From Mantamonas sphyraenae STR306 (Eukaryota > Protista > CRuMs), in contig JAPMXV010000073.1 in NCBI GenBank assembly GCA_026936335.1, positions 124,001 through 188,000 of the forward strand: 64,000 nt of DNA. The letters run 5' to 3'. Position numbers and translations under genes: made by a program. Positions within the stretch are counted from its first letter, which is position 1. Every line of letters starts with the position of its first letter. Under the pieces are notes generated by a model. It searched no databases. It saw only the letters and a program-made list of their open reading frames with translations, and was not told where the DNA came from. Of the stretch, positions 8,822-61,629 are shown piece by piece.

Positions 8822-8945
8822 GAGAGCGCCAGTGGCCAAGGAAAGGAAAGGAAAAGGAAGGAGGAACATAGGAAGCAGAAGAGAGGATGGGATGGGATGG
8901 GATGGAGTGAGTGAGTGCCCATGCATCGCCAACAAAAAACGGACA

Positions 8946-27352: not shown

Positions 27353-27432
27353 TGGGGGATGGAAGGAAGGTTGGGGTTTGGTGGTTTGCATGCGACGGCG
27401 GAGTCAAAAAAGAGAGAGAACGAACACACACG

Positions 27433-29839: not shown

Positions 29840-30540
29840 CTAGAAGGGATCGTCGTCGTCGTCGTCGTCGTTGAGCAGGAAGGAATCGTAGTTGCTGTTG
29901 CGATTGAGTGGGATGCGCAGTTTGCGTGCGTACGCCTGTGTCAACGCCTCCAGCGTGTCAAAGTGACTCTTCTTGTCCACAGTGTAGCCCTTGCCCGGGG
30001 CATTCTCGATGGGTTGGCCCACAATTTCCCTGTTGCCCTGCCTGCGTCGCACAAAGGTGACGATAAACTGGCCGGGGAAGGAGTTGCTGAAGCGCAACAG
30101 AAAGGTGCCCACGTCGCAGTTCTGCAGCTTCTTGGCCGCTTCGTTGCTGGCCAAATCGCCGTGGAACCAGGGTTTGTTCAGCGTGTCCCTGGCCCTGCTC
30201 ATGCAGTCGCCGTAGGGACCGAACCACTTGAGAAACACGTTGAAGCTCTCCTGGGTCACAAAGTCCAAGTACTCCTTGTTGCGTGTGTCCACCAGGTACT
30301 CCTTCAAATCGTCCATTCCTGCGCTGGTGATGTTGAACTGGCCCTGCATCGCCTCGGAAAACTCGTTCCACGCCACAAACAGGTTGCCCCCAAACGTTTC
30401 TATCCACATCCGTTGCGCCTCACTGTCTTGGATGTCCACCGTCTTCGTATTCACACCTCCGCCGTTGTTGTTGTTGCTGTTGCTGTTGTTGCTGTTGTTG
30501 TTGCCGCTGCTGTTGCTGCCATTGTTGTTTCCATCGCTGT

Positions 30541-30572
<32 letters not shown>

Positions 30573-30623
30573 TTTGTGCTGCCTGTGCTTCCACGTGCAC
30601 CTGCCTGCATGCCATTGCCCCCA

Positions 30624-30656
<33 letters not shown>

Positions 30657-39671: not shown

Positions 39672-42192
39672 ATGCAAGCACGTCCATTGTCGCCCATGGC
39701 ACGGGTGAGCAAGGTGAAGCGGTCGACGTCGCAACGGACGCCGAAGCAGCTGGGAGACAAGGAGAGGCGAAGGAGGATGCGGGCAAGGGAGGAACGTCTT
39801 CAGGAACGACGTGCGGCGCAGGCCAGAGAGCAGGCAAGGGCAAGAACGGCAGAGGAATATCTGGGGCCCTCTGCACGTGGGTTTCGCATGATTGCACGTG
39901 GTCGTGTGGATGATAGGATGGCCAGGGTGCAACGGGAGGCGGAGAAGATGAGGACCATACAGCTGCGCAGGCAGAGGGAGATGTTGGAGGTGAGTGGGGA
40001 GTGGGGAAGGAGAGGAGAGGAGGAGACGGGGGAGGAAAGGGTGGGGTGTGGGGTGGGGTGGGTGGGTGGGTGGGGTGGCAGGGGAGGGAGAGTGGGGGTG
40101 GTGGATTCGTGGACGACCGTTGCCGGGGGAGATGGGGCCGGGAAACTGACATTCGGGTGGCTGGCACACATACACACACACATGCACACAGAGGGAGTAT
40201 GCAGACAGGATGGCCATGATCCAAGCGGACATTGAAACAAAGGAGGAGAGGAAGAAAGCGGTGGAGGAGTATCGGGAGGCGGTGCAGAAGGACCGAGTGA
40301 TTGCAGGAAAGATGCGGGATCTGAAGGCCAAGAACAGGGTGCAACGGAAGCATGTGGAGCGGGAACTGGCACTGGAACGCCAGTTGGAAAGGGAGCGACA
40401 GAGGGAGAAGCAGATAGCCAAGGAGGCCAAGCGGAGACGGAGGGCAAAGAAGAAGGAGGAGAAGGAGCGACGAAGACGTGCGTTGGAACACACAATCCAC
40501 ACCGAAGAACGGTTCATTCGGGAGGCGATTGCACGGAGGAGGAGGATTGAGGAGGAGGATGTGGCGACACGGCAGATACTGTATGGGGAGTCGAGCAAGT
40601 GGAAGTTGTACGGAACACATCGACTGCCGCCGCTGACGACGTCGATTGGGGCCCACGAGGTGTACACGGTGCAGCAGGTGCACAAAGAGGCGATGCGCGT
40701 GCCGGTGGTGGGTGGGAAGGGTGTGGAGGTGGATGCAGACGACGAGGAGGAGCAGAACAAGCGGAAGTGGCAGGCGTTCAAGTACAGCGTGTATGGGGGC
40801 AAGGAGAAGTTTGATCAGATGGTGAGCACGGTGAGGGAACTGAATGCGATGGAGGCGGAGGAGGCAAGGAGGCAGTTTACGCTGATGAACACGACCGAGG
40901 CAGAGATGGAACGGGTGGTGCGATCGAGTTTGAGTCGAGGCAACGCATCGCGTGAGGCAGAGCTGCTTCGGAGCAACAAGCAGGCACGGCAGGAATTTGT
41001 GGTGCGGCAACACGAGGCGAAACGGCCGTCGTTCAGGGGAGGCAACGCAAGCAGCTTCATTGTGGTGGAGGAGGACCATGAGGTGGACCTGGTGGGGATT
41101 GGGGATGGTGGGGGGGATGAAGAGGGTGGCGGTGTGCTGGAGGAGGTGTTGGCAGAAACGTTGGAGAGGATGCGTGTGGAGGCAGGGAGTGGTGAGGAGG
41201 AGGAGGACGGAGAGGACGGGGAGGAATTGATGGAGGTTGCACCGGGGTACTTGGTGCAGGTGCAGAGGGGAGAGGGAAGGCGAACGGGAGATGGGCACAG
41301 GGAGAAGGGCCTGGAGGAGGACGGGGATAGCAGTGACAGCGATGATGAGACTGGGAGGAGGAGTGGGAGACGGACGGGGGATGGGGCCGGGGTGTCGTTT
41401 GAGAGCATGGAGGCACGGAAGGAAAGGCGGAGGAGTGAGGCAGGGATGGTGTTGCACACAGAGAGGATGGATGGGGAAGGGGATGATGGGTGGCAGGAGG
41501 AGGAAGAGGAGATGGTGTTGTTGGGATCGGCGAGCACGTCGTCGAGAGGGGCGACGGGAGTGGTGATGCGGCCGGTGGAGTCGGGGATGGGGTCGATGGG
41601 GAGTGAGGGGAGTGGGAGGGGAAGCAGAGGCGTGGGCAATGACACGCCGTTGAGCATGGGGAGCACGGGGAGTGACGGAGGAGTGGGTGGTGGTCGGATG
41701 TTGGGAGTGGGGACGCCTGAGAGGCTGCATTTGAAGCGGGGCAACAGTCATGCGGGGCTGGAGGCGTTGATGAGGCATCTGGGGGATGGGCCAGGTGGAG
41801 AGGGTGGAGAGGGCGGTGGTGGTGGAGGAGGGAAGGGTGGGCGCGGGAGGAGCATGAGCATGCGGGATGCACAGAGGGAGGCGATGGGGAGGAGTGGGAG
41901 GAGGAGGAGCAGTGTGGTGGGGAGGGGAGGGATGGTGGGGAGGCTGGAGAGGAGGGGAAGTGAGAGTGTGTTGTTGCAGGTGGGTGGGGGTGGTGGGGAT
42001 GGGATGGGTGGGATGTGACCGGGAGGGGGAAGGGGAGGAATGGAAGGTTGGTTTTGGTGGGTGTGTTGGGTGGGGTTTGGAAGGTTTGAGGGGGTGGGGC
42101 AGCTCCGCGAGGTGATCGTGGGACAGGACGAGGAGGAGGAAGACAGCGATGATGAGGATGAGGAGAGTGGCAAGGCGGAGGGTGGAAAGTGA
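39672..42192 (+). CDS. Coiled-coil, low-complexity hypothetical protein (exons 39672-39989, 40192-41979, probably 42103-42192)
   Basis: E/R/K-rich helical ORFs joined in frame by GT-AG introns; no recognisable domain. Confidence 0.6.
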
Positions 42193-42541
42193 CAGGAGCT
42201 GCATGAGCAGGCACTAGCGAGATGGTGGTGATGGCCGGGGGAGGGTGAGGAGGGAGTGGTGGGAATGAATGTTGGTATTGGTTGGGTGGGGTTTGGCAGG
42301 GAGGGGTTGGTGGTGGGAGGGAGGGAGGAAAGGAGGGAGGTGGGTGTGTGTTTGGTGCTCGGATGCACCGGGTGGACCACTGGAACTTGCAAGTGGAACA
42401 AGGTTGGTGTGCAGAGGGAGGGATGTGACTGTGGATTGGGGCTGGGTCATGGGAGGGGCGTTGTGGAAGGGCAAAAGGAGGAAGCCGAGATGGGTGTGAC
42501 GTGCTAGCGCTCACGCTGGACGCAGGACCAGTTGGTTGACC

Positions 42542-44726
42542 ATGAGCACACAGACGAAAGTGGACTGGCATTCACTGCTGCAGAACGGTGATGAGGAGCG
42601 CATTGGAGCGGCGTTGGCAGAGGCGGGTGAGGTATGTTTGTGCGGAGGGAAGGGAGGGGAAAGTCGTGGACGTGTCAGACGAAACGCATGGAGAGAGTAG
42701 GGTTTGGGACGATGGTTTCCTGAGATACGGGATGTGATCGCTGACACGAGTGGTGCAGCATTTGAACCTCGGGGAAAGGATCACGGACAATCTGGCAAAG
42801 GCACTGGCAAAGAACAGCAGCTTGAAGTCACTGAGACTTCGCAGCAACGTCATTGGGGAAGAGGAAGCAGCCGAACTGGCGCAGGCGCTGAGGGAGAACA
42901 GCAGTTTGGAGCACCTGGAAATGTACCAGAACAGCCTTGGCTACAGAGGGGTAGCAGCATTGGCAGACGCACTGTGTGAGAACAGCACCCTGCGGAGCTT
43001 GCACATCGGGAGCAACAGCATCGGTGACGAAGGTGCAGCAGAACTGGCCAAGGCTGTGGTTGTGAACAGCTGCCTGCAGGAGCTGAGCCTCGGCTTCAAC
43101 GACATCGGAGTCGAAGGGGCAGCAGCACTGGCAAGTACTCTGTGTGAGAACAACAGCTTGCAGACACTGGACCTCAGCCACAACACCATCGGTATAGAGG
43201 GTGTAACAGCACTGAGCAAGGCACTTTGCAAGAATAGTAGCTTGCTGACCTTGGAGCTTTACCACAACAACGTCGGGCACGAAGGAGCAACAGTGCTGGG
43301 AAAGGCACTGTGTGACAACAACAGCTTGCAGACACTGGACCTCAGACACAATGACATTGGTGCAGAGGGAGCAACAGCGCTGAGCGAGGCACTTTGCAAC
43401 AACAGCAGCTTGCTGTCCTTGCAGCTGTACTACAACAACGTCGGGCACGAGGGTGCATCAGCACTGGCGACGGTTCTTTCTGTGAACGACACCTTGCGGA
43501 CACTGGATCTGGACAGCAACGATATCGGGGACGAGGGAACATCCGCGCTGGCCAAGGCACTGTGTGACAACAACAGCCTGCAGACACTGATTCTCAATCG
43601 CAATAGCATCGGTGCAGAAACTGCAACTAAACTGAGCATGGCACTGTGCAACAACAGCAGCTTGCTGACACTGACTCTCGACGGCAACTCCATCGGTGCA
43701 GCTGGTGCACTAGCACTGAGCAAGGCACTGTGCACCAACAGCAGCTTGCAGACATTGCATCTCTACAAATCCAACGTCGGGGACGAGGGAGTAGCAGCGC
43801 TGGCACAGGCGCTGAGTGGGAACAGCACCTTGCGTCGCCTAAACATTGAGGGCAACGTCATCGGGGCCGAAGGGGCTGCAGCACTGGCAAAGGCACTGAC
43901 GGAAAACAACAGCTTGCAGAGACTGGGCCTTGGGGACAGCAACATCAGGGATGAAGAAGCATCAGCACTGGCGCAGGGACTGGGTGAAAACAACAGCTTG
44001 CAGACACTCATACTCAGCAGGAACAGCATCGGAGACAAAGGAGCAGCTGCTCTGGCGCAGGCACTGAGCAAGAACAGCACCTTGCAGAGACTGAATCTCA
44101 GAAACAATGTTATCAGCGCAGCAGGAGCAGTGGCACTGGCACAGGCGCTTGTTGAGAACAGCACCTTGCAGGAGCTGGAACTCGCGGCCAACTTCATCTT
44201 GAAGAAGGGAATTTCGGCTCTGGCAGTTGCGATGGAAGACAATCGATCAAGCTGGAAGATTGGCACCGGATCCCTAGTGTATGATCCACTGCGGTCACTG
44301 TTGGAGAGGAACAATGAGCGGCATGTGGAGTTTGTGCAGTGTGGGGATGTGAAGAGGATGGCTGGGCTGAGGGAGTGGGGTGTGCCCGTGGACACGCTTG
44401 CTGCACGTGAGGAGACGGCATTGGATAGAGCGGTGAAACAAGGGAATGATGAGGTGGTGGAGGCATTGCGGGGCTGGGGTGCTACAGTGAGTGAAAAGAC
44501 CGTGAAGTTGGTGAGGGAGGGAGGATGGAGGAAGGAGTGGCATTGGATCGGGTGGAGTGGGGTGGTGGATGAGGGGATGGAAGTGGCGTTGGTGATGAAT
44601 GGGGAGGAGAGGGAAGTGATGTTTGAGTGTGGGGGGATGGAAGGGTATGAGGCGAGTTGTGATTGGTGGACGGTGCCAGATGAGGTGATGGACAGGGTGT
44701 TGGGGTGGATGGGCAAGGGAGGGTGA
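42542..44726 (+). CDS. LRR(~18)-ankyrin-F-box-like-tail protein, copy A (exons 42542-42631, 42759-44726)
   Basis: 30-codon exon MSTQTKVDWHSLLQNGDEERIGAALAEAGE, gtatgt donor, CTGAC..tgcag acceptor. 28-aa RI-like LRRs, Ank ETALDRAVKQGNDEVVEALRGWGA, tail WWTVPDEVMDRVLGWM. Confidence 0.88.
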
Positions 44727-45007
44727 GGAGAGAGTGATGGGAATGAATGGTGGATTTGGGTTGGGTGGGGTTTGGCATTGGAGGGGATGGGGGTTGGGAA
44801 GGGGAAAGGTGGGAGTTGTGCCCTGCTCGGATGCACTGGGTGGACCACTGGAACTTGGAAAGAGACAAGGTTGGTGTGCAGAGGGAGGGATGCGACTGTG
44901 CATGGGGCTGGGTCATGGAAGGGGCGTTGTGGAAGGGCAAAAGGAGGAAGCCGAGATGGGTGTGACGTGCTGGAGCTCACACGGGACGCAGGACCAGTTT
45001 GTTGAGC

Positions 45008-47144
45008 ATGGGCTCAAAGAACATGGATAGTTGGAAGGAACTACTGCAGAGTGGTGATGAAGAGCGCATTGCAGTGGCATTGGCAGAGGCGGGTGAGGTA
45101 TGTTTGTGCGGCGGGAAGGGAGGGGGAAGTCGTGGACGTGTCACAGACGAGGAGGGGGGTGAGGGGAGACACGAACGCATGGAGAGAGTAGGGTTTGGAC
45201 GATGGTTGCGTGAGATACGGGATGTGATCGCTGACACGAGTGTTGCAGCAATTGACCCTGTGGGAGAGGATCAGGGGCAATCTGATGGTGACACTGGCCA
45301 AGGCACTGGCAAAGAACAGCAGCTTGAAGTCACTAAACCTTGGCGGCAGCGGTATCGGGGAGGAGGAAGCAGCCGAACTGGCGCAGGCGCTGAGGGAGAA
45401 CAGCAGTTTGGAGCACCTGGAAATGTACCAGAACAGCCTTGGCTACAGGGGGGTAGCAGCATTGGCAGACGCACTGTGTGAGAACAGCACCCTGCGGAGC
45501 TTGAACATTGGAGGCAGCAACATCGGTGACGAAGGTGCAGCAGAACTGGCCAAGGCTGTGGTTGTGAACAGCTGCCTGCAGGAGCTGAGCCTTTGTTTCA
45601 ACAACATCGGAGCCGAAGGGGCAGCAGCACTGGCAAATACTCTTTGTGAGAACAACAGCTTGCAGAGGCTGAACCTCAGCCACAACACCATCGGTATAGA
45701 GGGTGCAACAGCACTGAGCAAGGCACTGTGCAACAACAGCACCTTGGTGACCTTGCTGCTCTACAGAACCAAGGTTGGGGACGAGGGAGCGACGGCGCTG
45801 GCAAGGACTCTTTCTGTCAACGACACCTTGCGCAAACTGGACCTGGATAGCAACGGCATCGGGGAAGAGGGGGCATCAGCGCTGGCAAAGATTCTCTGTG
45901 AAAACAACAGCTTGCAGACACTGAATCTCAACCGCAATAGCATCGGTGCAGAAACTGCAACTAAACTGAGCATGGCACTTTGTGAAAACAGCAGCTTGAA
46001 GACCTTGCATCTCTACTCCAACAACATCGGTCCCGAGGGAGCAGCAGCGCTGGCACAGGCGCTGTGTGAGAACAGCATCTTGCAGACACTGAATCTCAAC
46101 AGCAACGACATCGGTGCAGAGGGTGCACTAGCACTGAGCAAGGCACTGTGCACCAACAGCAGCTTGCAGACATTGCAGCTTCACCACACCAAAATCGGGG
46201 ACGAGGGAGCGTCGGCGCTTGCACAGGCCATGTACGTGAACAGCACCTTGCGTCGCCTAAACATTGAGGGCAACGTCATCGGGGCCGAAGGGGCTGCAGC
46301 ACTGGCAAAGGCACTAACGGAAAACAACAGCTTGCAGAGACTGGACCTTGGTGACAACAACATCAGGGATGAAGAAGCATCAGCACTGGCGCAGGGACTG
46401 GGTGATAGCAGCAGCCTGCAGACACTCTTCCTCAGCAAGAACAACATCGGGGACAAAGGAGCAGCTGCTCTGGCGCAGGCGCTGAGCAAGAACAGCACCT
46501 TGCAGAGACTGGATCTGAGAAACAATGTTATCGGGACAGCAGGAGCAGTGGCACTGGCACAGGCGCTTGTTGAGAACAGCACCTTGCAGGCACTGGAACT
46601 CGGAGCCAACTTCATCTTGAAGAAGGGAATTTCGGCTCTGGCAGTTGCGATGGAAGACAATCGATCGTGCTGGAGGATTGACACCGGATCCTTCGTGTAT
46701 GATCCACTGCAATCGCTGTTGGAGAGGAACAAGGAGCGGCATGTGGAGTTTGTGCAGTGTGGGGATGTGGAGAAGATGGCTGCGTTGAGGGAGTGGGGTG
46801 TGCCTGTGGACACGCTCGCTGCACGTGAGGGGACGGCATTGGAACGAGCGGTGAAGCAAGGGAATGATGAGGTGGTGGAGGCATTGCGGGACTGGGGTGC
46901 TACAGTGAGTGAAGAGACCGTGAAGTTGGTGAGGGAGGAAGGGTGGAGGAAGGAGTGGCATTGGATTGGGTGGAGTGGGGTGGTGGATGAGGGGATGGAA
47001 GTGGCGTTGGTGATGAATGGGGAGGAGAGGGAAGTGATGTTTGAGTGTGGAGGGATGGAGGGGTATGAGGCGAGTTGTGAGTGGTGGACGGTGCCGGATG
47101 AGGTGATGGAGAGGGTGTTGGGGTGGATGGGCAAGGGAGGGTGA
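45008..47144 (+). CDS. LRR(~17)-ankyrin-tail protein, copy B (exons 45008-45097, 45249-47144)
   Basis: Same architecture; closest to copy A. Confidence 0.88.
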
Positions 47145-47428
47145 GGGAGAATGAATGGTGGCATTGGGTGGTGGGGGTTGGCATTGGAGGGGTGGGTGGG
47201 AGGGAGGGGGGAGAAAGGAGGGAGTTGTGCGTCTGCTGCTCGGATGCACTGGATGGCCCATTGGAACTTGGATAGAGACAAGGTTGGTGTGCAAGAAGGG
47301 AAGAGCGTGCAGCAGGGAGGTATGGGGCTGGGTCATGAGAGTGGGCGCTGTGTAAAGTGCAAAAAGGGGGGCCGAGATGGGTGTGACGTGCTGGAGCTCA
47401 CACGGGACGCAGGACCAGCTGGTTGGCC

Positions 47429-49116
47429 ATGAGCGCACAGATCAGGAGTGTGTGGAGGGCTCTGTTGTGGTATGGTGACGAGGAGCGCATTGAAGCGGCC
47501 TTGGCAGATGCGGGGGAGGTGAGTTTGCGATTAGAGGGAAATGAAGTCGGTTGGCCGTGGTGGGGAGTGAGGGAGGAGAGTTGCGTGAAATGTGGGACCA
47601 CTGGGTTCGCAAGTGACAGCTGACACGAATGATGCAGGACTTGAGTCTGCAAATGCTGGATATTGGTTCCGCCGAAGCAAAGTCACTGGCAAGGGCACTC
47701 GCTGCGAACAGCAGCTTACAGACGTTATCCCTCAGAATGAACGACATTGGGGATGAAGGTGCATCGGCGCTGGCCAAGGCTTTGGCAGCTAACCGCACGT
47801 TGCTGTCCCTGGCCTTGACCAACAATGCAATCGGCGTCGACGGAGCAACAGCACTGGCACAGGCACTGAATGAGAACAACAGCTTGCAGAGGCTGTACCT
47901 CGGCGGTAACAACATCGGATCAGAGGGAGCAGCATCACTCGCCAAGGCAATGGATATGAAGAGCAGCTTGCAGATGTTGGAACTCAGTGACAACAATGTC
48001 GAGTCAGAAGGGGCAGCAGCACTGGGTCAGGCGCTGAGAGAGAACAGCAGCCTAAAGGCACTGGACCTCAGAAGCAACAGCATTGGGGCAGAAGGGGCAG
48101 CAGCGTTGGCACATGCGCTTTCTGAGAACCGCAGCTTGCTGAGACTGGACGTCAGCAACAACAGCATCGAGGCAGAAGGAGCAGTATTACTGGCACAGGC
48201 ACTAGTTGAGAACCGCAGCTTGCTGAGACTGGACCTTGGGGCCAATGGCATCGGGGATGTGGGAGCAGAAGCAATGGCCCAGTCAATGTGCGAGAACAGT
48301 AGCTTGCAGACACTGCATCTCAGCAAGAACAACATCGGAGCAGAAGGGGCGGAAGCACTGGCGCAGGCGCTGAATGGGAACAGCACCTTGCAATCAGTTA
48401 CCCTTGATGGGAACAATATCGGGGCAGAAGGAGCAGCTGCACTGGCACAGGCACTCTGTGTGAACAGCAGCTTGCAATTCCTGGACCTTCGCATGAACAG
48501 GATCGGGATACCAGGGGCGGTGGCACTGACCCAGGCACTGGATGTGAACAGAAGGTTGCAGAGACTTGTCCTGGGCTCGAACGGCTTCTTGAAAGACGGG
48601 ACGGGAGCAATGGCCAAGGCGATGGAAAACAATCGATCGTGCTGGGCGATCCACTTCGGATTCGGTGTCGATGAAGCGCTGCAATCGCTGTTGAAGAGGA
48701 ACAAGGATCGGCATGTGGAGTTTGTGGAGTGTGGAGATGTGGAGAGGATGGCTGCGCTGAGGGAGTGGGGTGTGCCTGTAGACACGCTTGCTGCACGTGA
48801 GGAGACTGCGTTGGAGAGAGCGGTGAAGCAAGGGAATGATGAGGTGGTGGAGGCATTGCGGGGCTGGGGTGCTACAGTGAGGGAAGAGACGGTGAAGTTG
48901 GTGAGGGAGGAAGGATGGAGGAAGGAGTGGCATTGGATTGGGTGGAGTGGGGTGGTGGATGAGGGGATGGAAGTGGCGTTGGTGATGAATGGGGAGGAGA
49001 GGGAAGTGATGTTTGAGTGTGGAGGGATGGAAGGGTATGAGGCGAGTTGTGATTGGTGGACGGTGCCGGATGAGGTGATGGACAGGGTGTTGGGGTGGAT
49101 GGGGAAGGGAGAGTGA
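47429..49116 (+). CDS. LRR(~12)-ankyrin-tail protein, copy C (exons 47429-47518, 47638-49116)
   Basis: Same architecture; gtgagt donor. Confidence 0.88.
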
Positions 49117-49319
49117 GGAGAGAGTGATGGGAATGAATGGTGGATTTGGGTGGTGGGAAGGGTTGGATTGGAGGGTTGGGTGGGTGGAGGGGGGGGGAGA
49201 GGAGGGAGTTGTGTGTCTGGTGCTCGGATGCACTGGGTGGCCCACTGGAACTTGGATAGAGGCAAGGTTGGTCGGTGGTGTCTGTGTGGGAAGGGTGATG
49301 GTGGTGGAGAAGAGTGTGG

Positions 49320-49445
49320 AAGGGAGCAGTGGAGGAGGGGAGCACGTGAGAACGGGAGGGGAGCAGTGGAGGAGGGGAGCACGTGAGAACGGGAGGGGAG
49401 CACGTGGGAACGGGAGGGGAGCACGTGGGAACGGGAGGGGAGCTG
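49320..49445. repeat. Short ~21-bp tandem repeat (gggaggggagcacgtgrgaac) upstream of copy D
   Basis: Four CACGTG-containing units read directly; they replace the proximal spacer found upstream of the other copies. Confidence 0.8.
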
Positions 49446-49473
49446 ACACAAGGGGATCCAGGTCGATTTGATC

Positions 49474-51424
49474 ATGAGCACAACACATGAGGTGGACTGG
49501 GAGACACTGCTGCAGATCGGTGATCAGGAACGCATTGGGGAGGCATTGGAAGAAGCGGGGGAGGTAAGTTTGTAGTTTTGCAGGTTGGCTTCTGGGAAAG
49601 GCGGGTCTATGGCTGACACAGATGCTGTAGACCTTGGAACTACACGGCATGGAGACCAAAGGTGCGTCCGTGGTTCGCGCACTGATGGCAATGAGCCATT
49701 TGCGAGCACAGGCGTCTCTGAAGAACGGCAACGGCGAGATGGAAGCATCAGCGGGGGGGTCACAAGCACAGGGACAGAGACGGAACGTGATTAGGAACAA
49801 AATCAGCGACAGAGGTGCAGCCGTGCTGGCCGTGGCGTTGAGTGAGAACAGCAGGTTGACGACGCTGAACCTCGAGAGCAACAGCATCGGGCCAGAAGGG
49901 GCAGCAGCGCTTGCAACGGCAGTACGAAAGAACAGGAGCTTGCTGACGCTGATCCTTGCAAGGAACGAAATCGGGGCAGGAGGGGCGGAAGCACTGGCGG
50001 GGGCACTGGGGGAGAACGGAACCTTGCGCACACTGAACGTCGTTGCCAACAGGATCAACGACGAAGGGGCGGCAGCACTGGCACGTGCACTCAATGGGAA
50101 CAGCTCCTTGAGAAGGTTGGATCTCGACAGCAACTGCATCGGGGCAGAAGGGGCAACAGCACTGGCGGAGGCACTAAGAGAGAATAGCAGCTTGAAGAGA
50201 TTGGATCTGGACAGCAACCACATCGGGGCAATTGGGGCAGTCGCCTTGGCAAAGGCACTGGCAGAGAATAGCAGCTTGCAGACACTGTCACTTCACATGA
50301 TCAACATTGGGGGAGAAGGAGTCGAAGCAATTTTCAAGGCACTGCAAAGGAACAACTGCTTGCAGACACTGGACCTCGCCAGCACCTGGATCCAAGGGGA
50401 AGGGGCAGCAGCACTGGCAGAGGCACTGAGTGGGAACAGCAGCTTGAAGACGCTGAAACTCAGTAGCAACAGGTTTGGAGACGAAGGGGCAGCATCACTG
50501 GCGCAAGGACTGGCTGAGAACAGCAGCTTGCAGACACTGGACCTCCGCCAAACCCGCATTGGGCCAGAAGGAGCCGCTGCACTGGCACAGGTGCTGAGTG
50601 AGAACGACAGTTTGCAAACAGTCAACCTTGACCTCAACAACATCGGAGCAGAAGGGGCGGAAGCACTGGCGCAGGCCCTGAATGTGAACAGCACCTTGCA
50701 ATCAGTTACCCTTGATGGGAACAACATCGGGGCAGAAGGAGCAGCTGCACTGGCACAGGCACTCTGTGTGAACAGCACCTTGCAATTCCTGGACCTTCGC
50801 ATGAACAGGATCGGGACACAAGGGGCGATGGCACTGGTCCAGGCACTGGATGTGAACAGAAGCTTGCAGAGACTTGTCCTGGGCTCGAACGGCTTCTTGA
50901 AAGACGGGACGGGAGCAATGGCCAAGGCGATGGAAAACAATCGATCGTGCTGGGCGATCCACGTCGGATTCGGTGTCGATGAAGCGTTGCAATCTCTGTT
51001 GAAGAGGAACAAGGAGCGGCATGTGGAGTTTGTGAAATGTGGGGATGTACAGAGGATGGCTGCGCTGAGGGAGTGGGGTGTGCCTGTGGACACGCTTGCT
51101 GCACGTGAGGAGACTGCGTTGGAGAGAGCGGTGAAGCAAGGGAATGATGAGGTGGTGGAGGCATTGCGGGGCTGGGGTGCTACAGTGAGGGAAGAGACGG
51201 TGAAGTTGGTGAGGGAGGCAGGATGGAGGAGGGAGTGGCATTGGATTGGGTGGAGTGGGGTGGTGGATGAGGGGATGGAAGTGGCGTTGGTGATGAATGG
51301 GGAGGAGAGGGAAGTGATGTTTGAGTGTGGGGGGATGGAAGGGTATGAGGCGAGTTGTGCGTGGTGGACGGTGCCAGATGAGGTGATGGAGAGGGTGTTG
51401 GGGTGGATGGGCAAGGGAGGGTGA
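49474..51424 (+). CDS. LRR(~13 regular + degenerate N-terminal)-ankyrin-tail protein, copy D (exons 49474-49563, 49631-51424)
   Basis: gtaagt donor, ctgtag acceptor; first two repeats irregular; last LRRs match copy C. Confidence 0.86.
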
Positions 51425-51723
51425 GGAGGGAATGATGGGAATGAATGTTGGCATTGGGTGGATGGGGGTTGGCATTGGAGGGGATGGGGGGTGGGAAGGG
51501 GAAAGGAGGGAGTTGTGCCCTGCTCGGATGCACTGGGTGGACCACTGGAACTTGGGAAGAGAGACAAGGTTGGTGTTGAGTAGGGGGAAGAGTGTGCAGA
51601 GGGAGGGATGTGACTGTGGATGGGCTGGGTCATGGGAGGGGTGTTGTGGAAGGGCAAAACGAGGAAGCTGAGTTGCTTGTGACGTGCTGGGGCTCACACG
51701 GACGCAGGGCCAGTTGGTTGACC

Positions 51724-53236
51724 ATGGACACAGAGCCATCACTGTATTGGAAGGAATTGCTGCAGAGCGGTGATGAGGAGCGCATTGGAGTGGCATTGGC
51801 AGAGGCCGGGGAGGTGAGTTTGCGAGAAGAGGGCAACGAAGTCGGTTGGCCGTGGTGGGGAGTGAGGAAGGAGAGGCGTGTGAATGTGGGACCGCTGGGT
51901 GCGCATGTGACAGCTGACACGGATTGTGTAGGAGATGTGGCTGCAAATGATGGATTTTGGTCCCGCCGAAGTGAAATCCCTGGCAAAGGCACTGGCTGGG
52001 AACAGCAACTTGCAGAGGTTGAACCTCGGTATCAATGACATAGGGGACGAAGGTGCCTCGGAACTGGCCAAGGCTTTGGCAGCGAACAGCAGCTTGTTGT
52101 CCCTGGCCTTGAGCAGCAATGCAATCGGCGTCGACGGAGCAACAGCACTGGCACAGGCGCTGAATGAGAACAACAGCCTGCTGAGGCTGTACCTCACAAG
52201 AAACAGCATCAAGGCACAAGGGGCAGCAGCTTTGGCACAGGCACTGGGTAAGAACAGCAGGTTGCAGGTGTTGGAACTCCACAGCAACAGCATCGGGGAT
52301 GAGGGAGCAGCAGCACTGGGGCAGGCACTGAGTGAGACCAGATGGTTGCATACACTGGACCTCAGAAACAATAGCATCGGGGCAGCAGGAGCAGCAGCTT
52401 TGGCACAAGGACTGGGTGAGAACAGAAGTCTCCGGCAACTGAATCTTGGCAACAACAACTTCGGGGACGAAGGGGCAGCAGCAATTGGACAGGCACTGAG
52501 GGAGAACAGTAGCTTGCAGACACTGAATCTCGACGACAACAACGTCGGAGCAGAAGGGGCAACAGCACTTGGGCAGGCACTGAGTCAGAACAGCACCTTG
52601 CAGACAATGTTCCTCAACACCAACAGCCTCGGAGAAGAAGGCGCATCCGCTCTGGCTGAGGGACTGAGTGAGAACAGCACCTTGCAGAGACTGTACCTTG
52701 ACCAGAACAAGATCGGAGAAGAAGGAGTGTCGGCTCTGGCCAAGGCGATGGACAGCAATCGATCGTGCTGGCAGATGGAGGTCGGAGCCGTTGTCGATGA
52801 GGCATTGCAGGCACTGTTGAAGGGGAACAAGGAACGGCATGTGGAGTTTGTGCAGTGTGGGGATGTGGAGAGGATGGCTGCGCTGAGGGTGTGGGGTGTG
52901 CCTGTAGACACGGCACGTTGGGAGACGGCATTGGAACGAGCGGTGAAGCAAGGGAATGATGAGGTGGTGGAGGCATTGCGGGACTGGGGTGCTACAGTGA
53001 GTGAAGAGACCGTGAAGTTGGTGAGGGAGGGAGGATGGAGGAAGGAGTGGCATTGGATAGGGTGGAGTGGGGTGGTGGATGAGGGGATGGAGGTGGCGTT
53101 GGTGATGAATGGGGAGGAGAGGGAAGTGATGTTTGAGTGTGGAGGGATGGATGGGTATGAGGCGAGTTGTAAGTGGTGGACGGTGCCAGATGAGGTGATG
53201 GAGAGGGTGTTGGGGTGGATGGGCAAGGGAGGGTGA
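51724..53236 (+). CDS. LRR(~10)-ankyrin-tail protein, copy E (exons 51724-51813, 51932-53236)
   Basis: Same architecture; 5' end resembles copy C. Confidence 0.88.
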
Positions 53237-53504
53237 GGGGGAATGAATGTTGGTATTTGGTGGGTTGGTGGGTGGGAGGGGAAAGGTGGGAGTTGGGTGT
53301 CTGCTGCTCGTATGCACTGGGTGGCCCACTGGAACTTGGAAAGAGACAAGGTTGGTGTGCAAGGAGGGAAGAGTGTGCACAGGGAGGGATGCGACTGTGG
53401 ATGGGACTGGGTCATGGGAGGGGTGTTGTGGAAGGGCAAAAAGCGGACGCTGAATTGGTTGTGACGTGCGAGCTCACACGGGACGCAGGACCAGTTGATT
53501 GACC

Positions 53505-55393
53505 ATGGGCACACAGAAGAAAGTGAACTGGAAGGAACTGCTGCAGAGCGGTGATGAAGAGCGCATTGTTGTGGCGTTGGAAGAGGCGGGCGAGGTATGT
53601 TTGTGCGAGGCAACGTCTCCCGTGCGTGGGTATGGGCGGTGGTGACTGACACACCTGTGAAGACATTGAAACTGAGTTGGCTGGGCATTACGGCAGAGGA
53701 GGCAGTTGCACTGGCCACAGCACTGGCTGAGAACAGCAGTGTGCGCACGCTGAACCTCAACGTCAACAATACCTTCGGAGCAGAGGGGGCAGCAGCACTG
53801 GCACAGGCATTGTGTGTGAACAACAGCTTGCAGACAGTGAATCTCATCGGAAGTAGCATCGGGGACGAAGGAGCAGCGGCACTGGCACACGCACTGGGCG
53901 AGAACAGCAGCTTGCTCGCGCTGTGGCTTCAGGAGAACCACATCGCGTACGAAGGAGCTGCAGCGTTGGCCGAGGGATTGAGTGCCAACTGCAGCCTGCA
54001 GACACTAAGCTTTTCCGACAACACAGTTGGGGCAGAAGGAGCAGCTCTTCTGGCACAGGCGTTGTGTGTGAACGGCACCTTGCGGACGCTTGACTTGCAC
54101 GGCAACAGAATCGGTGACAAGGGAGCAGCAGCACTCGCAAAGTCACTGTGTGGTAACCAAAGCTTGCAGCAGCTGATTGTGAACAACAATGGCATCGGTG
54201 CAGAAGCAGCAGCAGAACTGGCCGCGGCACTTCGATGGAACAGCACTTTGCAGACACTGGGCCTTCAAAACAACAGAATCGGTGATGAAGGAACAGCAGC
54301 ACTGGCACAAACACTGGGTAGGAACAATGGCTTGCAGACACTGGAGCTCGACAAGAACAGAATTGGATCAGAAGGAGCAGCAGCACTGGGGCAGGCACTG
54401 AGTGAGAACAGCAGCTTGCTGGCACTGAGTGTAACCGACAACAACATCGGGGCAAAAGGGTCAGCAGCACTGGCACACGGTCTTGCTGTGAACAGTCGCT
54501 TGCAGGCACTGTTTCTCAGCAAGAACGGCATCGGAGACGAAGGTGCAGCAGCGCTTGTGCAGGCACTGAGTTCGAACAGTAGCTTGCAGACACTGCTTCT
54601 GAGCTTGAACAGCATCGGGGACACAGGGACAGCAGCGCTGGCACAGGCACTGGGTAGGAACAGTGGCTTGCAGCAAGTGAATCTCAACAACAACAACATT
54701 GGCGTACATGGGGCAACAGCACTAGCACAGGCACTGAGTGAGAACAGCACCTTGCAGACATTGCTCCTCAACAGCAACAGCATCGGGGAAGAAGGTTCTT
54801 CCGCTCTGGCTGAGGGATTGAGTGAGAACAGCAGCTTGCAAAGACTGTTCCTCAACCAAAACAAGATCGGGGAAGAAGGTGCATCCGCTCTGGCCAGGGC
54901 GATGGAAGACAATCGATCGTGCTGGGAGATTGAGTTTCGAATCGTCGACTCCAATCTGAAAGCACTGTTGAAGAGGAACAAGGATCGGCATGTGGAGTTT
55001 GTGGAGTGTGGTGATGTGGAGAGGATGGCTGCGCTGAGGGAGTGGGGTGTGCCCGTGGACACGCTTGCTACGTGGGCAGACACGGCATTGGAACGAGCGG
55101 TGAAGGGAGGAAATGATGAGGTGGTGGAGGCATTGCGGGGCTGGGGTGCTCAAGTGAGGGAAAAGACGGTGGAGTTGGTGAGGGAGGCAGGATGGAGGAG
55201 GAAGTGGCATTGGATTGGGTGGAGTGGGGTGGTGGATGAGGGGATGGAAGTGGCGTTGGTGATGAACGGGGAGGAGAGGGAAGTGATGTTTGAGTGTGGG
55301 GGGATGGAAGGGTATGAGGCGAGTTGTGAGTGGTGGACGGTGCCGGATGAGGTGATGGAGAGGGTGTTGGGGTGGATGGCCAAGGGAGGGTGA
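53505..55393 (+). CDS. LRR(~15)-ankyrin-tail protein, copy F (exons 53505-53594, 53663-55393)
   Basis: Same architecture; 68-nt intron. Confidence 0.88.
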
Positions 55394-55678
55394 GGAGGGA
55401 TTGATGGGAATGAATGGTGGCATTGTTTGGGTGTGGGTTGGCGTTGGGGGGATTGGTGGGTGGGGTGGGGGGGGAGGAGGGAGTTGTGTGGCTGGTGCTC
55501 GGATGCACTGGGTGGACCACGGGAACTTGCAAGTGGGACGAGGTTGGTGTGCACAGGGAGGGATGTGACTGTGGATGGGACTGGATCATGAGAGGGCGTT
55601 GTGGAAGGGCAAAAGGAGGAAGCCGAGATGGGTGTGACGTGCTGAAGCTCACACGGACGCAGGACCAGTTGGTTGACC

Positions 55679-57479
55679 ATGAGCACACAGATGGATGTAG
55701 ATTGGAAAGAGTTGCTGCAGAGCGGTGATGAGGAGCGCATTGCAGTGGCATTGGCAGAGGCGGGGGAGGCAAGTTTGCGCTGCGCGAAGGGAGGGGGAAT
55801 TCGTGGACGTGTCACAGACGAGGAGGGTTGAGAGGGGAGACACGAACGCATGGAGAGAGTAGATTATGGTCGATGGTTGCGTGAGATACGGGATGTGATC
55901 GCTGACACGAGTGGTGCAGCATTTGAGCCTGGGGAACAAGATCGTTGACAAACTGATGGTGACACTGGCCAAGGCACTGGCAAAGAACAGCAGTTTGAAG
56001 TCACTGAACCTTCGCAGCAACGTTATCGGGGACGAGGAAGCAGCAGAGCTGGCGCAGGCGCTGAGGGAGAACAGAAGTTTGGACCGCCTGGAACTCTACA
56101 AGAACAGCCTTGGCTACAGAGGGGTAGCAGCATTGGCAGACGCACTGTGTGTGAACAACACGCTGCGGAGCTTGAGCATCGGGAACGACAACATCGGAGA
56201 CGAAGTGGCAGCAGCACTGGCCAAGGTTCTTGTTGGGAACAGCTGCCTGCAGGAGCTGAGCCTTTGCTTCAACAACATCGGAGCCGAAGGGGCAGCAGCA
56301 CTGGCCGGGGCACTCTGTGTCAACAGTAGCTTGCAAATATTGCTTCTCAGCATGAACGGCATCGGAGACGAAGGTGCAGCAGCACTAGGGCAAGCACTGA
56401 GTAAGAACAGCAGCCTGAACACAATGTTGCTCATCAAGAACGGAATCGGGGACGAAGGGGCATCAGAACTGGCACAGGGACTGCGCGAGAACAGCAGCTT
56501 GTTGAGGCTTTTGCTCCAGGAAAATCGGATCGGAGACGAAGGTGCAGCAGCGTTGGCCAAGGCATTGCGTGCCAACAGCAGCGTGCAGACACTGAACTTG
56601 ACCGACAACAATGTTGGGGCAGAAGGAGCCTCAGCTCTGGCTAGGGGACTGTGTGAGAACAGCACTTTGCGGACACTGGACCTCAACAGGAACAGAATTG
56701 GATCAGAAGGAGCAGCGGCACTGGGGCATGCACTAAGAAAGAACAGCAGCTTGCGTGCACTGGGTCTCAGCGACAACAACATCGGGGCAGCAGCTGCAGC
56801 AGCAATGACCGGGGCTCTCTGTGTGAACAGTGGCTTGCAGACACTGTTCCTATCCATGAACAGCCTCGGGGACGAAGGTGCAGCAGCTCTGGCTGAAGGA
56901 CTATCTCAGAACAGCACCTTGCAGAGACTCTACCTCGCCAGCAACAGCATCGAGGTGGAAGGTGCATCCGCTTTGGCCAAGGCGATGGAAGACAACCGGT
57001 CGTGCTGGAAGATTCAGATCAGAGTCGACGACGCTGTAGCGCTGCAATCGCTGTTGGAGAGGAACAAGGAGCGGCATGTGGAGTTTGTGGAATGTGGAGA
57101 TGTACAGAGGATGGCTGCGCTGAGGGAGTGGGGGGTGCCTGTAGACACGCTTGCTGCACGTGAGGGGACGGCGTTGCAACGAGCGGTGAAGCAAGGGAAT
57201 GATGAGGTGGTGGAGGCATTGCAAGGCTGGGGTGCTACAGTGAGGGAAGAGACGGTGAAGTTGGTGAGGGAGGTAGGATGGAGGAGGGAGTGGCATTGGA
57301 TTGGGTGGAGTGGGGTGGTGGATGAGGGGATGGAAGTGGCGCTGGTGATGAATGGGGAGGAGAGGGAAGTGATGTTTGAGTGTGGTGGGATGGATGGGTA
57401 TGAGGCGAGTTGTGAGTGGTGGACGGTGCCGGATGAGGTGATGGAGAGGGTGTTGGGGTGGATGGCCAAGGGAGGGTGA
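55679..57479 (+). CDS. LRR(~13)-ankyrin-tail protein, copy G (exons 55679-55768, 55920-57479; GC-AG intron)
   Basis: Donor is GAG|gcaagt at the position where the other copies have GT. Confidence 0.82.
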
Positions 57480-57776
57480 GGAGGGAATGAATGGTGGCAT
57501 TGGGTTGGGTGGGGTTTGGCATTGGAGGGGATGTGGGTGGGAGGGGGAGAAAGGAGAGCAGTGTTGGGTGTCTGCTGCTCGGATGCGAAGGGTGGACCAC
57601 TGGAACTTGGATAGAGACAAGGTTGGTGTGCAAGGAGGGAAGAGTGTGCAGAGGGAGGGATGCGACTGTGGATGGGCCTGGGTCATGGGAGGGGTGTTGT
57701 GGAAGGCAAAAAGTGGATGCGGAATTCAGTGTGACATTCTGAAGCTCACATGGGACGCAGGACCAGTTGGATGACC

Positions 57777-59920
57777 ATGGGCACACAGACGAAAGTGAAC
57801 TGGAAGGAACTGCTGCAGAGCGGTGATGAGGAGCGCATTGGGGTGGCGTTGGAAGAGGCGGGGGAGGTATGTTTCGGGGCGGCAGGTTTCCCGTGCGTGG
57901 GCATGGGTGGTGGTGACTGACACCCGTGTTGCAGACATTGCAACTGAGTTGGCTGGGCATCAGAGCAGAGGAGGTAGTTGCACTGGCCACAGCACTGGCG
58001 GTGAACAGCAGTGTGCGCACGCTGAACCTCGACTTCAACAAATCCTTCGGAGCCGAGGGGGCAGCAGCACTGGCACAGGCATTGTGTGTGAGCAACAGCT
58101 TGCAGACAGTGAATCTCTACGGGAACCGCATTGGGGACGAAGGAGCAGCGGCACTGGCACTGGCACTGGGTGAGAACAGCAGCTTGCTGGCGATTTGGCT
58201 CCAGAACAACCGCATCGGATACGAAGGAGCAGCAGCGTTGGCCAAGGGATTGAGTGCCAGCTGCAGCTTGCAGACACTGAGCTTATCCGACAACACACTT
58301 GGAGCAGAAGGAGCAGCAGCACTGGCACAGGCGTTGTGTGTGAACAGCACCTTGCGAATGCTTGACGTGCACGACAACAGAATCGGTGACAAGGGAGCAG
58401 CAGCACTCGCAAAGTCACTGTGTGGCAACCAAAGCTTGCAGCAGCTGATTGTGAACAACAATGGCATCGGTGCAGAAGCAGCAGCAGAACTGGCCGGAGC
58501 ACTCAGTTTGAACAGCACTTTGCAGACACTGGGCCTTCAAAGCAACAGAATCGGTGACACAGGAACAGCAGCACTGGCACAGGCACTATGTGGCAACTGC
58601 AACTTGATGGAACTGCGTCTCAGCGCCAACCAGATTGGTGACACAGGAGGAGCAGCACTGGGGCAGGCACTGAGTGAGAACAGCAGCTTGCTGGCACTGA
58701 GCCTCAGCGACAACAACATCGGGGCAGAAGGGTCAGCAGAACTGGCACACGGTCTTGCTGTGAACAGTCGCTTGCAGACACTGTTTCTCAGCAAGAACGG
58801 CATCGGCGACGAAGGGGCAACAGCACTTGGGCAGGCACTGAGTTCGAACAGTTGCTTGCAGACACTGCTTCTGAGCATGAACAGCATCGGGGACACAGGG
58901 GCAGCAGCGCTTGGGCAGACACTGACTGAGAACAGCAGCTTGAAGACCATCTACCTCGACAGAAACAGCATTGGGGCAGAAGGAGCCTCAGGTCTGGCTA
59001 GGGGACTGTGTGAGAACAGAAGCTTGCGGAGACTTTACCTCAATCAGAACAGCATCGGTGCAGAAGGAGAATCAGCTCTGGCTAGGGGACTGAGTCAGAA
59101 CAGCAGCTTGCAAAGACTAGGCCTCAGTATGAACAACCTCGGGGCGGAAGGGACAGCGGCAATGGCACAGGCGTTGAGTGAGAACAACAGCTTGCAGCAT
59201 CTGAATCTCAACGACAACAACATCGGGGAAAAGGGGGCAACAGCGTTGGCTCAGGCGCTGAGTGTGAACAGCGCCTTGCACACAATGCTCCTCGACAACA
59301 ACAGCGTCGGGGAAGAAGGTGCATCAGCTCTGGCTGAGGGACTGAGTAAGAACAGCACCTTGCAGAGACTGTACCTCGGCAGAAACAGCATCGAGGAGGC
59401 AGGTGCATCCGCTCTGGCAAAGGCGATGGAAGACAATCGATCGTGCTGGCAGATTCAGATCGGAGCCGTTGTCGATGAGACATTGCAGGCACGGTTGAAG
59501 AGGAACAAGGATCGGCATGTGGAGTTTGTGCAGTGTGGGGATGTGAAGAGGATGGCTGCGCTGAGGGAGTGGGGTGTGCCTGTGGACACACTTGCTGCAC
59601 GTGAGGTGACGGCGTTGCAACGAGCGGTGAAGGAAGGGAATGATGAGGTGGTTGAGGCATTGCGGGACTGGGGTGCGAATGTGAGGGAAGAGACGGTGGA
59701 GTTGGTGAGGGAGGCAGGATGGAGGAAGGAGTGGCATTGGATTGGGTGGAGTGGGGTGGTGGATGAGGGGATGGAAGTGGCGTTGGTGATGAACGGGGAG
59801 GAGAGGGAAGTGATGTTTGAGTGTGGAGGGATGGATGGGTATGAGGCGAGTTGTGCGTGGTGGACGGTGCCAGATGAGGTGATGGAGAGGGTGTTGGGGT
59901 GGATGGCCAAGGGAGGGTGA
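57777..59920 (+). CDS. LRR(~18)-ankyrin-tail protein, copy H (exons 57777-57866, 57935-59920)
   Basis: Same architecture; closest to copy F. Confidence 0.88.
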
Positions 59921-60095
59921 GCAGTTTTGGGTGGAATGAAGACTGCAATGGAACGATGATGATGACCCACCTCACACACACAATCAATCATTCCCTTTCT
60001 CTTCCCCATCCATGTCTTCCATAACCTCCCCCCCCGATCCCGCCCCCTTCCCAACCACCTCAACCAACACCAAACACCCCATCCGACACCCACCC

Positions 60096-61629
60096 ATGTC
60101 CAACACGTTTGAAACCAAGGCACAGAAGGAGACTTCGGGACTCAAGAGCCACGCCGGCTTGTCTGCCGTCCCTGCGTCGGGCGTCGACGTCAACTCGACC
60201 ATCAAGAGCTACCTGGCCGTCCACGACGATTCCAAGGGCGACAAGAGCGAGGAGCGCAAGACCACGTCCCTGGACATGGTCAACGCCTACTACGATCTGG
60301 TCACCGAGTTTTACATCCACGGGTAAGTTGTGACACAAGCCAGCGGTGTGGGAAAGGGCGCACGGCGTGGTTTTTTTGTGTGTGGTTGGCCAGGTTGGGT
60401 CCAGGAACGAACGGCCGAAAAAAAACGCAACCGGTGGAGTGTTGCCCACGGGCTGACACAGAGGATGGTGGGGATGATGGGACACATGGACAAACATGCA
60501 GATGGGGCGAGGGATTCCACTTTGCATCCCGTGCTGTGGGAGAGACGTTCCTGGAGTCGATCAAGCGCCATGAGTACTGGCTTGGGCACATGCTTCAGGC
60601 GCAGCCGGGCGACAAGATTGTGGACCTTGGGTGCGGCATTGGCGGACCCATGCGCAACGTGTCTCGGTAAGTGTGGGAGTGGGAAGGGTGTGGAGAGGAG
60701 GATGGCGTGGATGGGGGGTGGTTATGGATGGGCGATGGGCGGGGGCGAGAGGCGAGGAAAAGTCGAGGGACATACACGCCGGAAAGGGTGGTTGGGAGGC
60801 TGACGCGGGCGGGACACACACACACAGCTTTCTGAACCACGGTGTGACGAAGGAGGAGGACCTTGTGCACATTGTGGGTGCCAACAACAACGCGCACCAG
60901 GTGAGTGGAGAGGGTGAGGGTGGGAAACGCGTGGGCGAACTGGCTTTTCGTGAACTTTCCCGTTTCGGGTGGACCTGGAAAGGACGCTGACGGCGAATGG
61001 GGACACAGATTGCCAAGGGCAAGCAGTACAACATCGACGCAGGACTGGACCACTGCTGCAGCTTCCTGAAGTGCAGCTTCATGGACATGCCTGTGGAGGA
61101 CGGAGAGTTTGACCGTGCGTTTGCAGTGGAGGCAACGTGCCATGCACCGGACAAGAACGAGCTGTACGCAGAGATCTTCCGTGTGCTGAAGCCCGGAGGC
61201 ACGTTCTTCAGCTACGAGTGGTGCTTGACGCCGCGATACGACCCGCAGAACCGTGAGCACCAGGAGATCAAGAAGGGGATCGAGGTGGGAGATGGTCTGC
61301 CGGACATGGACACGATGGAGTACACGATCGAGTGCCTGGAAAAGGCCGGGTTTGAGATTGTGTTTGAGCGTGACGTGGCTCTGGACAGCCCCGTGCCCTG
61401 GTACGAGTCGCTGTCGCCGTCGTTCACTCTGGAGGGCTTCCGTCGCACATGGGCAGGTCGCATGACGACGCGTGTGGCTGTGAGCATCCTGGAGGCACTG
61501 TGGCTGGCACCCAAGGGCACGACAGAGACGAGTGACATGCTGAACGCAGCAGCCGACGCTCTGGTGGCAGGTGGTGAGACGGGCATCTTTACGCCCATGT
61601 ACGCCATTCTGGTGCGCAAGCCCGAGTAA
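60096..61629 (+). CDS. SMT1: Sterol C24-methyltransferase (SMT/ERG6 family); exons 60096-60322, 60502-60666, 60828-60900, 61009-61629
   Basis: VNAYYDLVTEFYIHG|WGEGFHFA, SAM motif IVDLGCGIGGPMR, AVEATCHAPD, RVLKPGG..YEW, IEVGDGLP, LVAGGETGIFTPMY. Three in-frame GT-AG introns. Confidence 0.92.

Follow-up and report, generated by a model that had tools for sequence, protein, structure and literature searches.

Gene structure of the array

The stretch analysed here, 64,000 nucleotides (nt) of Mantamonas sphyraenae STR306 contig JAPMXV010000073.1 (referred to below as the window), contains at positions 42542–59920 a tandem array of eight intact two-exon genes on the + strand whose products combine leucine-rich repeats (LRRs) and ankyrin repeats with a shared C-terminus. 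The initial annotation had proposed such an array from 42542 to 59920, and this description is borne out: all eight open reading frames (ORFs) are intact and all end in ...SC.WWTVPDEVM[ED]RVLGWM[GA]KG[GE]-stop, and the 13-residue motif within this string recurs in the window only in a ninth, related gene (5940–7352, +). From N- to C-terminus, each array protein comprises a 30-amino-acid peptide specified by exon 1 and then the LRRs, which are closed by a cap and followed by two probable ankyrin repeats. A tryptophan-rich tail of ~75 amino acids completes the protein and ends in TVPDEVM[ED]RVLGW followed by five residues.

Exon 1 is a conserved, phase-0 exon of 90 nt, beginning in gene 1 with the ATG at 42542, and it encodes a peptide containing W.ELLQSGDEERI. 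It is followed by an intron of 67–151 nt with a CTGAC branch site, and the donor, branch and acceptor sites are conserved in all eight genes. Seven of the introns begin with GT; that of gene 7 (55769–55919) is a GC-AG intron with the donor GCAAGT, otherwise conserved in its CTGAC branch site and gtgcag acceptor. Our family searches used exon 2 or parts of it, with the exons not joined; the exon 1 peptide, scanned separately, matched no family.

The eight genes, all on the + strand, specify 9–17 full LRRs each. Gene 1 (42542–44726; exon 1 42542–42631, intron 42632–42758, exon 2 42759–44726) specifies 17 full LRRs and matches the Pfam LRR_6 family with E 7.9e-73, and gene 2 (45008–47144; exons 45008–45097 and 45249–47144) specifies 16. 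Gene 3 (47429–49116; exons 47429–47518 and 47638–49116) has 11 LRRs (LRR_6 E 3.7e-58) and terminates in KGE rather than KGG, and gene 4 (49474–51424; exons 49474–49563 and 49631–51424) has about 14. The shortest repeat region, of 9 LRRs, belongs to gene 5 (51724–53236; exons 51724–51813 and 51932–53236; LRR_6 E 2.1e-42; ribonuclease inhibitor RNH1, 1dfj, E 2.3e-53), in which a deletion of two amino acids also shortens the loop between ankyrin repeats 1 and 2. Gene 6 (53505–55393; exons 53505–53594 and 53663–55393) has 14 LRRs, one of them of 29 amino acids, gene 7 (55679–57479; exons 55679–55768 and 55920–57479) has 12, and gene 8 (57777–59920; exons 57777–57866 and 57935–59920) has 17 (LRR_6 E 2.6e-70). 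In gene 4 an atypical N-terminal stretch of ~70 amino acids (49631–49840, as read in the ORF) precedes the first regular LRR and replaces the usual partial repeat; it may conceal either another small intron or a repeat that has diverged.

Immediately upstream of gene 1 lies a relic (42220–42541, +) that consists of the last ~25 coding nt of an array unit together with its 3' flank, and that is 85–86% identical to the flanks following genes 1 and 6. This relic marks the boundary of the amplified unit. It directly follows an unrelated gene for a charged, low-complexity protein (40210–42192).

We considered whether the locus could be an array of pseudogenes and ruled this out, as the ORFs and splice signals are all intact and the ratio of nonsynonymous to synonymous substitution rates (dN/dS) is below 1. 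Long ORFs of up to 892 amino acids, rich in proline, serine and histidine, also run antisense to the array (42750–59987, −). We rejected these as genes; they match no family and look like compositional by-products of the strong G/A-rich bias of the coding strand.

Variable repeats and constant 3' ends

Each LRR domain consists of 9–17 complete units of 28 residues and a partial one at its N-terminus; genes 6 and 8 each contain one unit of 29 residues. Scores against LRR_6 are 140–235 bits for the eight copies (E 2e-42 to 8e-73) compared with a cut-off of 23.4 bits and, with 108 in-register 28-residue units in all, the repeats are of the ribonuclease inhibitor (RI) type. Their closest relatives of solved structure are RNH1 (E 2.3e-53) and the LRR domains of NLRP3/5/14, LRRC34 and RanGAP1.

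The description of these repeats as divergent and diversified proved accurate: LRR regions are only 51–85% identical between copies, and their variability is concentrated on the concave face. Across the 108 repeats, Shannon entropy is below 1.2 bits at scaffold positions N1, L4, L7, L9, N12, I14, G15, G18, A19, A21, L22, A23 and L26. Its peaks, of 3.1–3.6 bits, fall on positions 8, 10, 11 and 13, which correspond to the exposed x residues of the beta-strand motif LxLxxNx. In pairwise comparisons, dN/dS is 0.63–2.1 at the variable positions (position 6 included) and 0.23–0.46 at the scaffold positions.

The other end of the protein behaves in the opposite way. Identity to copy 1 is 78–91% over the last 180 amino acids and 87–96% over the last 84, the latter corresponding to the last 252 coding nt of each copy (52982–53233, +, in gene 5, which we use as the example of this C-terminal module). 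Within the module the most constrained element is a terminal amphipathic helix, TVPDEVMERVLGW, whose 13-amino-acid motif starts on the + strand at 44673, 47091, 49063, 51371, 53183, 55340, 57426 and 59867.

Synonymous divergence (dS) follows the same division, at 0.76 in the LRR region, 0.19 in the C-terminal block and 0.10 in the last 60 codons, where dN/dS is 0.19. In an old pair of copies, genes 5 and 8, dS drops from 0.63 in the LRRs to 0.10 in the tail block; in the youngest pair, genes 1 and 2, it is alike in both regions, at about 0.15–0.25. Mean pairwise nucleotide identity is about 0.70 across the LRRs, rises abruptly to 0.92 some 425 nt ahead of the stop codon, peaks at 0.98 between 215 and 66 nt before it and drops to 0.67 within 25–80 nt past it. 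These patterns indicate that the 3' ends of the array are homogenised by concerted evolution, probably in the form of gene conversion. The C-terminal block had been called near-identical; because dS is so much lower there than in the LRRs (0.10–0.19 versus 0.76), this likeness is in part a product of concerted evolution. Purifying selection is superimposed on the tail, since the likeness does not extend into the non-coding flanks. In this locus, two opposite evolutionary regimes are clearly displayed within one gene, with a diversifying LRR face set against a 3' end homogenised by concerted evolution.

A ninth tail and a chassis shared with kinases

The ninth copy of the ankyrin and tail module (5940–7352, +) is found in a 470-amino-acid protein that lacks LRRs and shares 39% identity with the array over 131 amino acids (E 2e-21). 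The N-terminal part of this paralogue matches Ank_4 and Ank_2 above their cut-offs. Its terminal motif, encoded from 7296, is identical to TVPDEVMERVLGW at 13 of 13 positions even though four codons differ synonymously, and a second block of the tail, N.EERE.MF..GGM..YE, is also kept; the cysteines of the array copies (in ECGG and SC) are not. Its stop codon lies one residue off the array position and has no donor-like context. Because this divergent paralogue stops there too, without a splice-donor-like site, the motif appears to stand at the true C-terminus of the array proteins. We had considered a hidden downstream exon that might complete an F-box, since the array stop codon sits in a GTGAG-like string. 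This was ruled out by the same stop in the paralogue without such a string and by the frame of the next exon 1, which is closed upstream of its ATG.

Three further genes share the architecture of the array up to the tail. These LRR-ankyrin-tyrosine kinase-like (TKL) genes lie on the + strand at 10434–12921 (exon 1 10434–10523, large ORF 10603–12921), 14906–17159 (exon 1 from about 14906, large ORF 15072–17159) and 19204–22536 (exon 1 from 19204, large ORF 19357–22536). Exon 1, LRRs, cap and two ankyrin repeats are common to both groups, with 50% identity over 333 amino acids, and the kinase genes part from the array directly after ankyrin repeat 2, exactly where the tail starts. Because the same chassis carries a TKL kinase at this point, the tail occupies the position of an output domain, and the locus shows in clear form how nature has exchanged domains while the chassis was conserved. 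The best matches of the kinase domains among 5.8 billion proteins are only 24–43% identical and are spread over oomycetes, labyrinthulids, plants, Thecamonas and Naegleria. In contrast to the diversified LRRs of the array, those of the kinases (10603–22536) are almost uniform within and between genes, with entropy near 0 at 22 of 28 positions, which suggests recent intragenic repeat amplification or homogenisation.

The kinase genes belong to a tandem triplication (8406–22536, +) in which a NECAP/DUF1681 gene (8406–9857, 13532–14299 and 17841–18608) is each time followed by an LRR-ankyrin-TKL kinase. The main difference between the three kinases is how many LRRs they contain (about 8, 6 and 19 units); in other respects they are near-identical.

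The homology to the kinases also bears on the ankyrin repeats of the array. To speak of an ankyrin array, as the initial annotation did, is an overstatement: there are two repeats per protein, following an N-R-S-C-W cap, and individually they remain below the Pfam cut-offs (12–19 bits versus 21–27). Their ankyrin identity is nonetheless supported by matches to designed and natural ankyrin proteins in the PDB, which cover residues 22–78 of the C-terminal block (DARPins among them, with ASB11 among the weak matches), and by homology to the corresponding part of the kinases nearby, which scores above the Ank_4 cut-off (28–38 bits versus 22.7).

The window is 55–62% G+C, with a strong G-over-C skew of 0.24–0.42 across the array, and its introns are spliceosomal, with GTATGT, GTGAGT or GTAAGT donors, CTGAC branch sites and YAG acceptors. 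Housekeeping genes encode Avl9, an acyl-CoA synthetase-type AMP-binding enzyme, NECAP/DUF1681, exportin-7, a GOST seven-transmembrane (7TM) protein and a sterol methyltransferase. A word search with the exportin-7 of the window returned nothing, the proteins encoded here have no entries of their own in the databases, and tRNA and Rfam scans of the window gave no match. An ORF at 29840–32023 (−) has an unusual architecture, in which a weak CHAT match is combined with a STAND NTPase of NACHT/NB-ARC type, a Cbl N2 EF-hand-like domain and an SH2 domain. This hints at phosphotyrosine signalling and, together with the TKL kinases, would by gene content suggest a unicellular amorphean (Amoebozoa or Holozoa). 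Two other features have no obvious link to the array. One is an ORF at 27319–29331 (+) with a 670-amino-acid product, in which the only domain recognised is a ubiquitin-like one at the N-terminus; the other, a fragment of a sterol C-methyltransferase gene, closely follows the array (60997–61629, +).

The tail as a candidate docking module

As far as public data go, the tail module appears to be lineage-restricted. A word-index search of the 5.8-billion protein set with the tail region of gene 5 found no match, and an exhaustive HMMER search of 1.84 billion representative proteins with an 84-amino-acid tail profile found no true relative. The two HMMER matches that were returned (P0001 and P0002) we rejected as chance, since they sum short matches over repeats; P0001, the one inspected, comes from a bacterium and is a repeat protein that carries the motif GWHF.GWSG. 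A profile built from nine tail sequences found nothing in IMG/VR, in GTDB genomes (one per species) or in JGI metagenomes, nor did a degenerate DNA pattern for the terminal motif find anything in metagenomes. Because the viral, prokaryotic and metagenome collections gave nothing, an origin of the tail from a viral or bacterial PRANC-type protein has no support.

At about an even chance, we favour the reading that the array encodes cytosolic modular adaptors, a family restricted to its lineage and amplified in tandem, whose members would all dock through the same kind of tail. The LRRs would form a horseshoe of the RI/NLR type and, because the concave-face residues differ from copy to copy, the copies would be expected to bind different ligands. 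The constant ankyrin and tail module would serve as a non-catalytic docking module, exchangeable with a kinase on the same chassis, and would link all family members, together with one protein without LRRs, to a single shared partner. As the terminal helix copies the loop-helix-1 signature of the F-box, the leading candidate for this partner would be a Skp1-type adaptor of cullin-RING ligases. Ligand diversity, docking function and partner identity are in each case what we infer from the sequences.

Several observations weigh against the adaptor reading. With regard to the tail, part of its apparent conservation reflects concerted evolution and not selection, and the second conserved block, N.EERE.MF..GGM..YE, suggests a compact, self-standing domain rather than a bare docking helix. 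Two AlphaFold2 models are of low confidence (predicted local distance difference test (pLDDT) scores of 39.5 and 49.9); only the terminal helix is reproducible between them, and they disagree on the secondary structure that precedes it. A Foldseek search with the second model, which is not interpretable, gave no match below E 0.6. Profile support for an F-box is at noise level and comes from one copy only. With regard to the LRRs, dN/dS at the variable positions is near 1, and not clearly above it, in the youngest pair (0.71 for genes 1 and 2), so that their variability may instead reflect relaxed constraint.

A rather unlikely alternative would make the tail an orphan domain complete in itself, without relation to cullin ligases and with a role for instance in oligomerisation, localisation or the binding of a small ligand. 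The array proteins would then be kinase-less relatives of the neighbouring LRR-ankyrin kinases, acting as decoys or regulators that compete for the ligands of the kinases. Consistent with this, the two conserved blocks span about 45 amino acids, which is more than one helix, and the tail has no threshold homology to known families. The chassis is common to the kinases, and kinase and array genes are clustered within one 50-kb region. The strongest constraint, however, falls on the terminal amphipathic helix. Moreover, because the LRR faces are diversified in the array and nearly uniform in the kinases, the two groups probably do not share ligands.

The initial annotation had tentatively seen in the C-terminus an F-box or PRANC-like element. 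In its specific form, this would make the terminal helix a minimal F-box, consisting of helix 1 only, that binds Skp1, and the eight proteins substrate receptors of Skp1-cullin-F-box (SCF) ligases with a reversed, C-terminal topology; we regard this as unlikely, and the F-box call itself as a reasonable but unproven lead of similarly low probability. The part that stands is the signature [LV]P.E[LIV][LM]..[IV][FL]..[LM] of F-box loop and helix 1, which is complete in nine of nine copies and occurs nowhere else in the six-frame translation (expectation from shuffles, 0.005–0.04). The motif fits each loop-helix-1 position, with W at −3, then [LV]P.E, and hydrophobic residues at 5, 6, 9, 10 and 13. 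According to a review of poxviral ankyrin proteins (PMC4353913), the C-terminal F-boxes of these viruses retain two of the three helices, the loop and helix 1 make most of the contacts with Skp1, and cowpox CP77, in which only helix 1 is left of the F-box, nevertheless binds Skp1. The order of repeats followed by a box is likewise that of the ankyrin/F-box proteins of poxviruses and Orientia.

The part that does not stand is the profile similarity. The sole match to an F-box model, F-box_5 (PF18511), is found in one of nine copies, the 5940–7352 paralogue, in which it covers the last 28 amino acids and profile positions 3–21 of 42 at 13–14.5 bits against a cut-off of 25.5 (best E 0.027); no F-box model of any kind matches the eight array copies. 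At E ≤ 10, neither the block nor its last 26–45 amino acids matches F-box (PF00646), F-box-like (PF12937), PRANC (PF09372) or SOCS_box. When the PDB was searched with a profile of the tail at E ≤ 10, no F-box chain was recovered; the matches were noise, for example a chromodomain at E 1.6, and an NCBIfam scan also gave noise only. Unrelated families match equally well in the same scans (PRiA4_ORF3 at E 0.007, a DNA polymerase model at E 0.018), which places the F-box_5 match at the noise floor. The element also falls short of an F-box in size: an F-box is a three-helix domain of ~40–50 amino acids, and because the array proteins end 5–6 residues past helix 1, helices 2 and 3 are absent. It shares with PRANC, a truncated F-box of two helices, the C-terminal position after ankyrin repeats, but only one helix fits. 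Finally, the idea that the proteins tag foreign proteins for degradation is speculation that our results do not support.

Still more doubtful is an extension of this reading, in which the locus would represent a class of cullin-RING substrate receptors that this unicellular eukaryote has evolved for itself. Here a sensor of diversifying RI-type LRRs would be followed by two ankyrin repeats and, in reversed topology, by a one-helix C-terminal F-box, as a cellular counterpart of the ankyrin-PRANC proteins of poxviruses and Orientia, and the same sensor chassis could alternatively be wired to a kinase, so that recognition would be coupled to either phosphorylation or degradation in a manner reminiscent of innate immunity. 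Should the tail dock the family to a ubiquitin ligase, a layout so far known from effectors of poxviruses and Orientia, with a helix-1-only F-box at the C-terminus, would for the first time be seen in a cellular family. One LRR sensor chassis with two outputs, kinase or degradation, in a protist would also bear on the origin of modular immune-type receptors.

Two other identities for the tail are very improbable. In cellular Cul2/5 receptors the box is C-terminal and follows repeat domains, and the terminal helix loosely fits the [STP]-hydrophobic-x3-x-x3-[VIL] pattern of a BC box that would bind Elongin C; yet there is no SOCS_box or VHL-box match at E ≤ 10, positions 2 and 6 are Val instead of the near-invariant Leu and of Cys/Ser/Ala, and the protein ends with no room for a Cul2/Cul5 box. 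Equally improbable is a derivation of the tail, by degeneration, from the C-terminal third of a PRiA4_ORF3/MM3350-like domain (PF07929): the LRR copies match consistently over profile positions of about 101–162 of 173 (E 0.007–0.19), but at only 12–16.5 bits against a cut-off of 26.6 for a domain of ~170 amino acids, and the matches are not independent because the eight copies are near-identical. The paralogue at 5940–7352 lacks both the match and the ECGG and SC cysteines, and neither an MM3350 chain in the PDB profile search nor a PRiA4-type protein in the exhaustive HMMER search was recovered.

The array resembles several known systems in part. With RI/NLR-type (LRR_6) proteins it shares strict 28-residue repeats and concave-face variability, but unlike in these proteins the genes are in tandem and their 3' ends are kept alike. 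It also departs from NLRs (NACHT-LRR proteins) in having no NACHT or other NTPase at the N-terminus, where the 30-amino-acid exon 1 product has no family match and exon 2 opens with LRRs, and in its continuation into two ankyrin repeats and an orphan tail. PRANC proteins of poxviruses and Orientia, cowpox CP77 in particular, are likewise multi-copy and carry repeats first and a short F-box-like element at the extreme C-terminus; in the array, however, the recognition domain is an LRR with only two ankyrin repeats, the PRANC profile does not match, and the genes are cellular ones with spliceosomal introns and no relative in IMG/VR or GTDB. Proteins of the FBXL group (Skp2, TIR1/COI1) also combine LRRs with an LP.E-helix-1 signature, and the one F-box model to respond, F-box_5, is of the TIR1 type. 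Their F-box, in contrast, is N-terminal and has three helices, whereas the array element is C-terminal, has one helix and lies 11 bits under the cut-off. In ankyrin-SOCS-box (ASB) proteins, which serve as substrate receptors in cells, a short box at the C-terminus docks to the ligase; the array is like them in placing a short C-terminal element after a repeat domain, but unlike them has no SOCS_box match or Cul5 box. The LRR-ankyrin-TKL kinases of the window (10434–22536) offer the comparison by homology, in exon 1, the LRRs, the NSSCW/NRSCW cap and the two ankyrin repeats; where the array proteins have the tail, the kinases continue into a third ankyrin repeat and the kinase domain.

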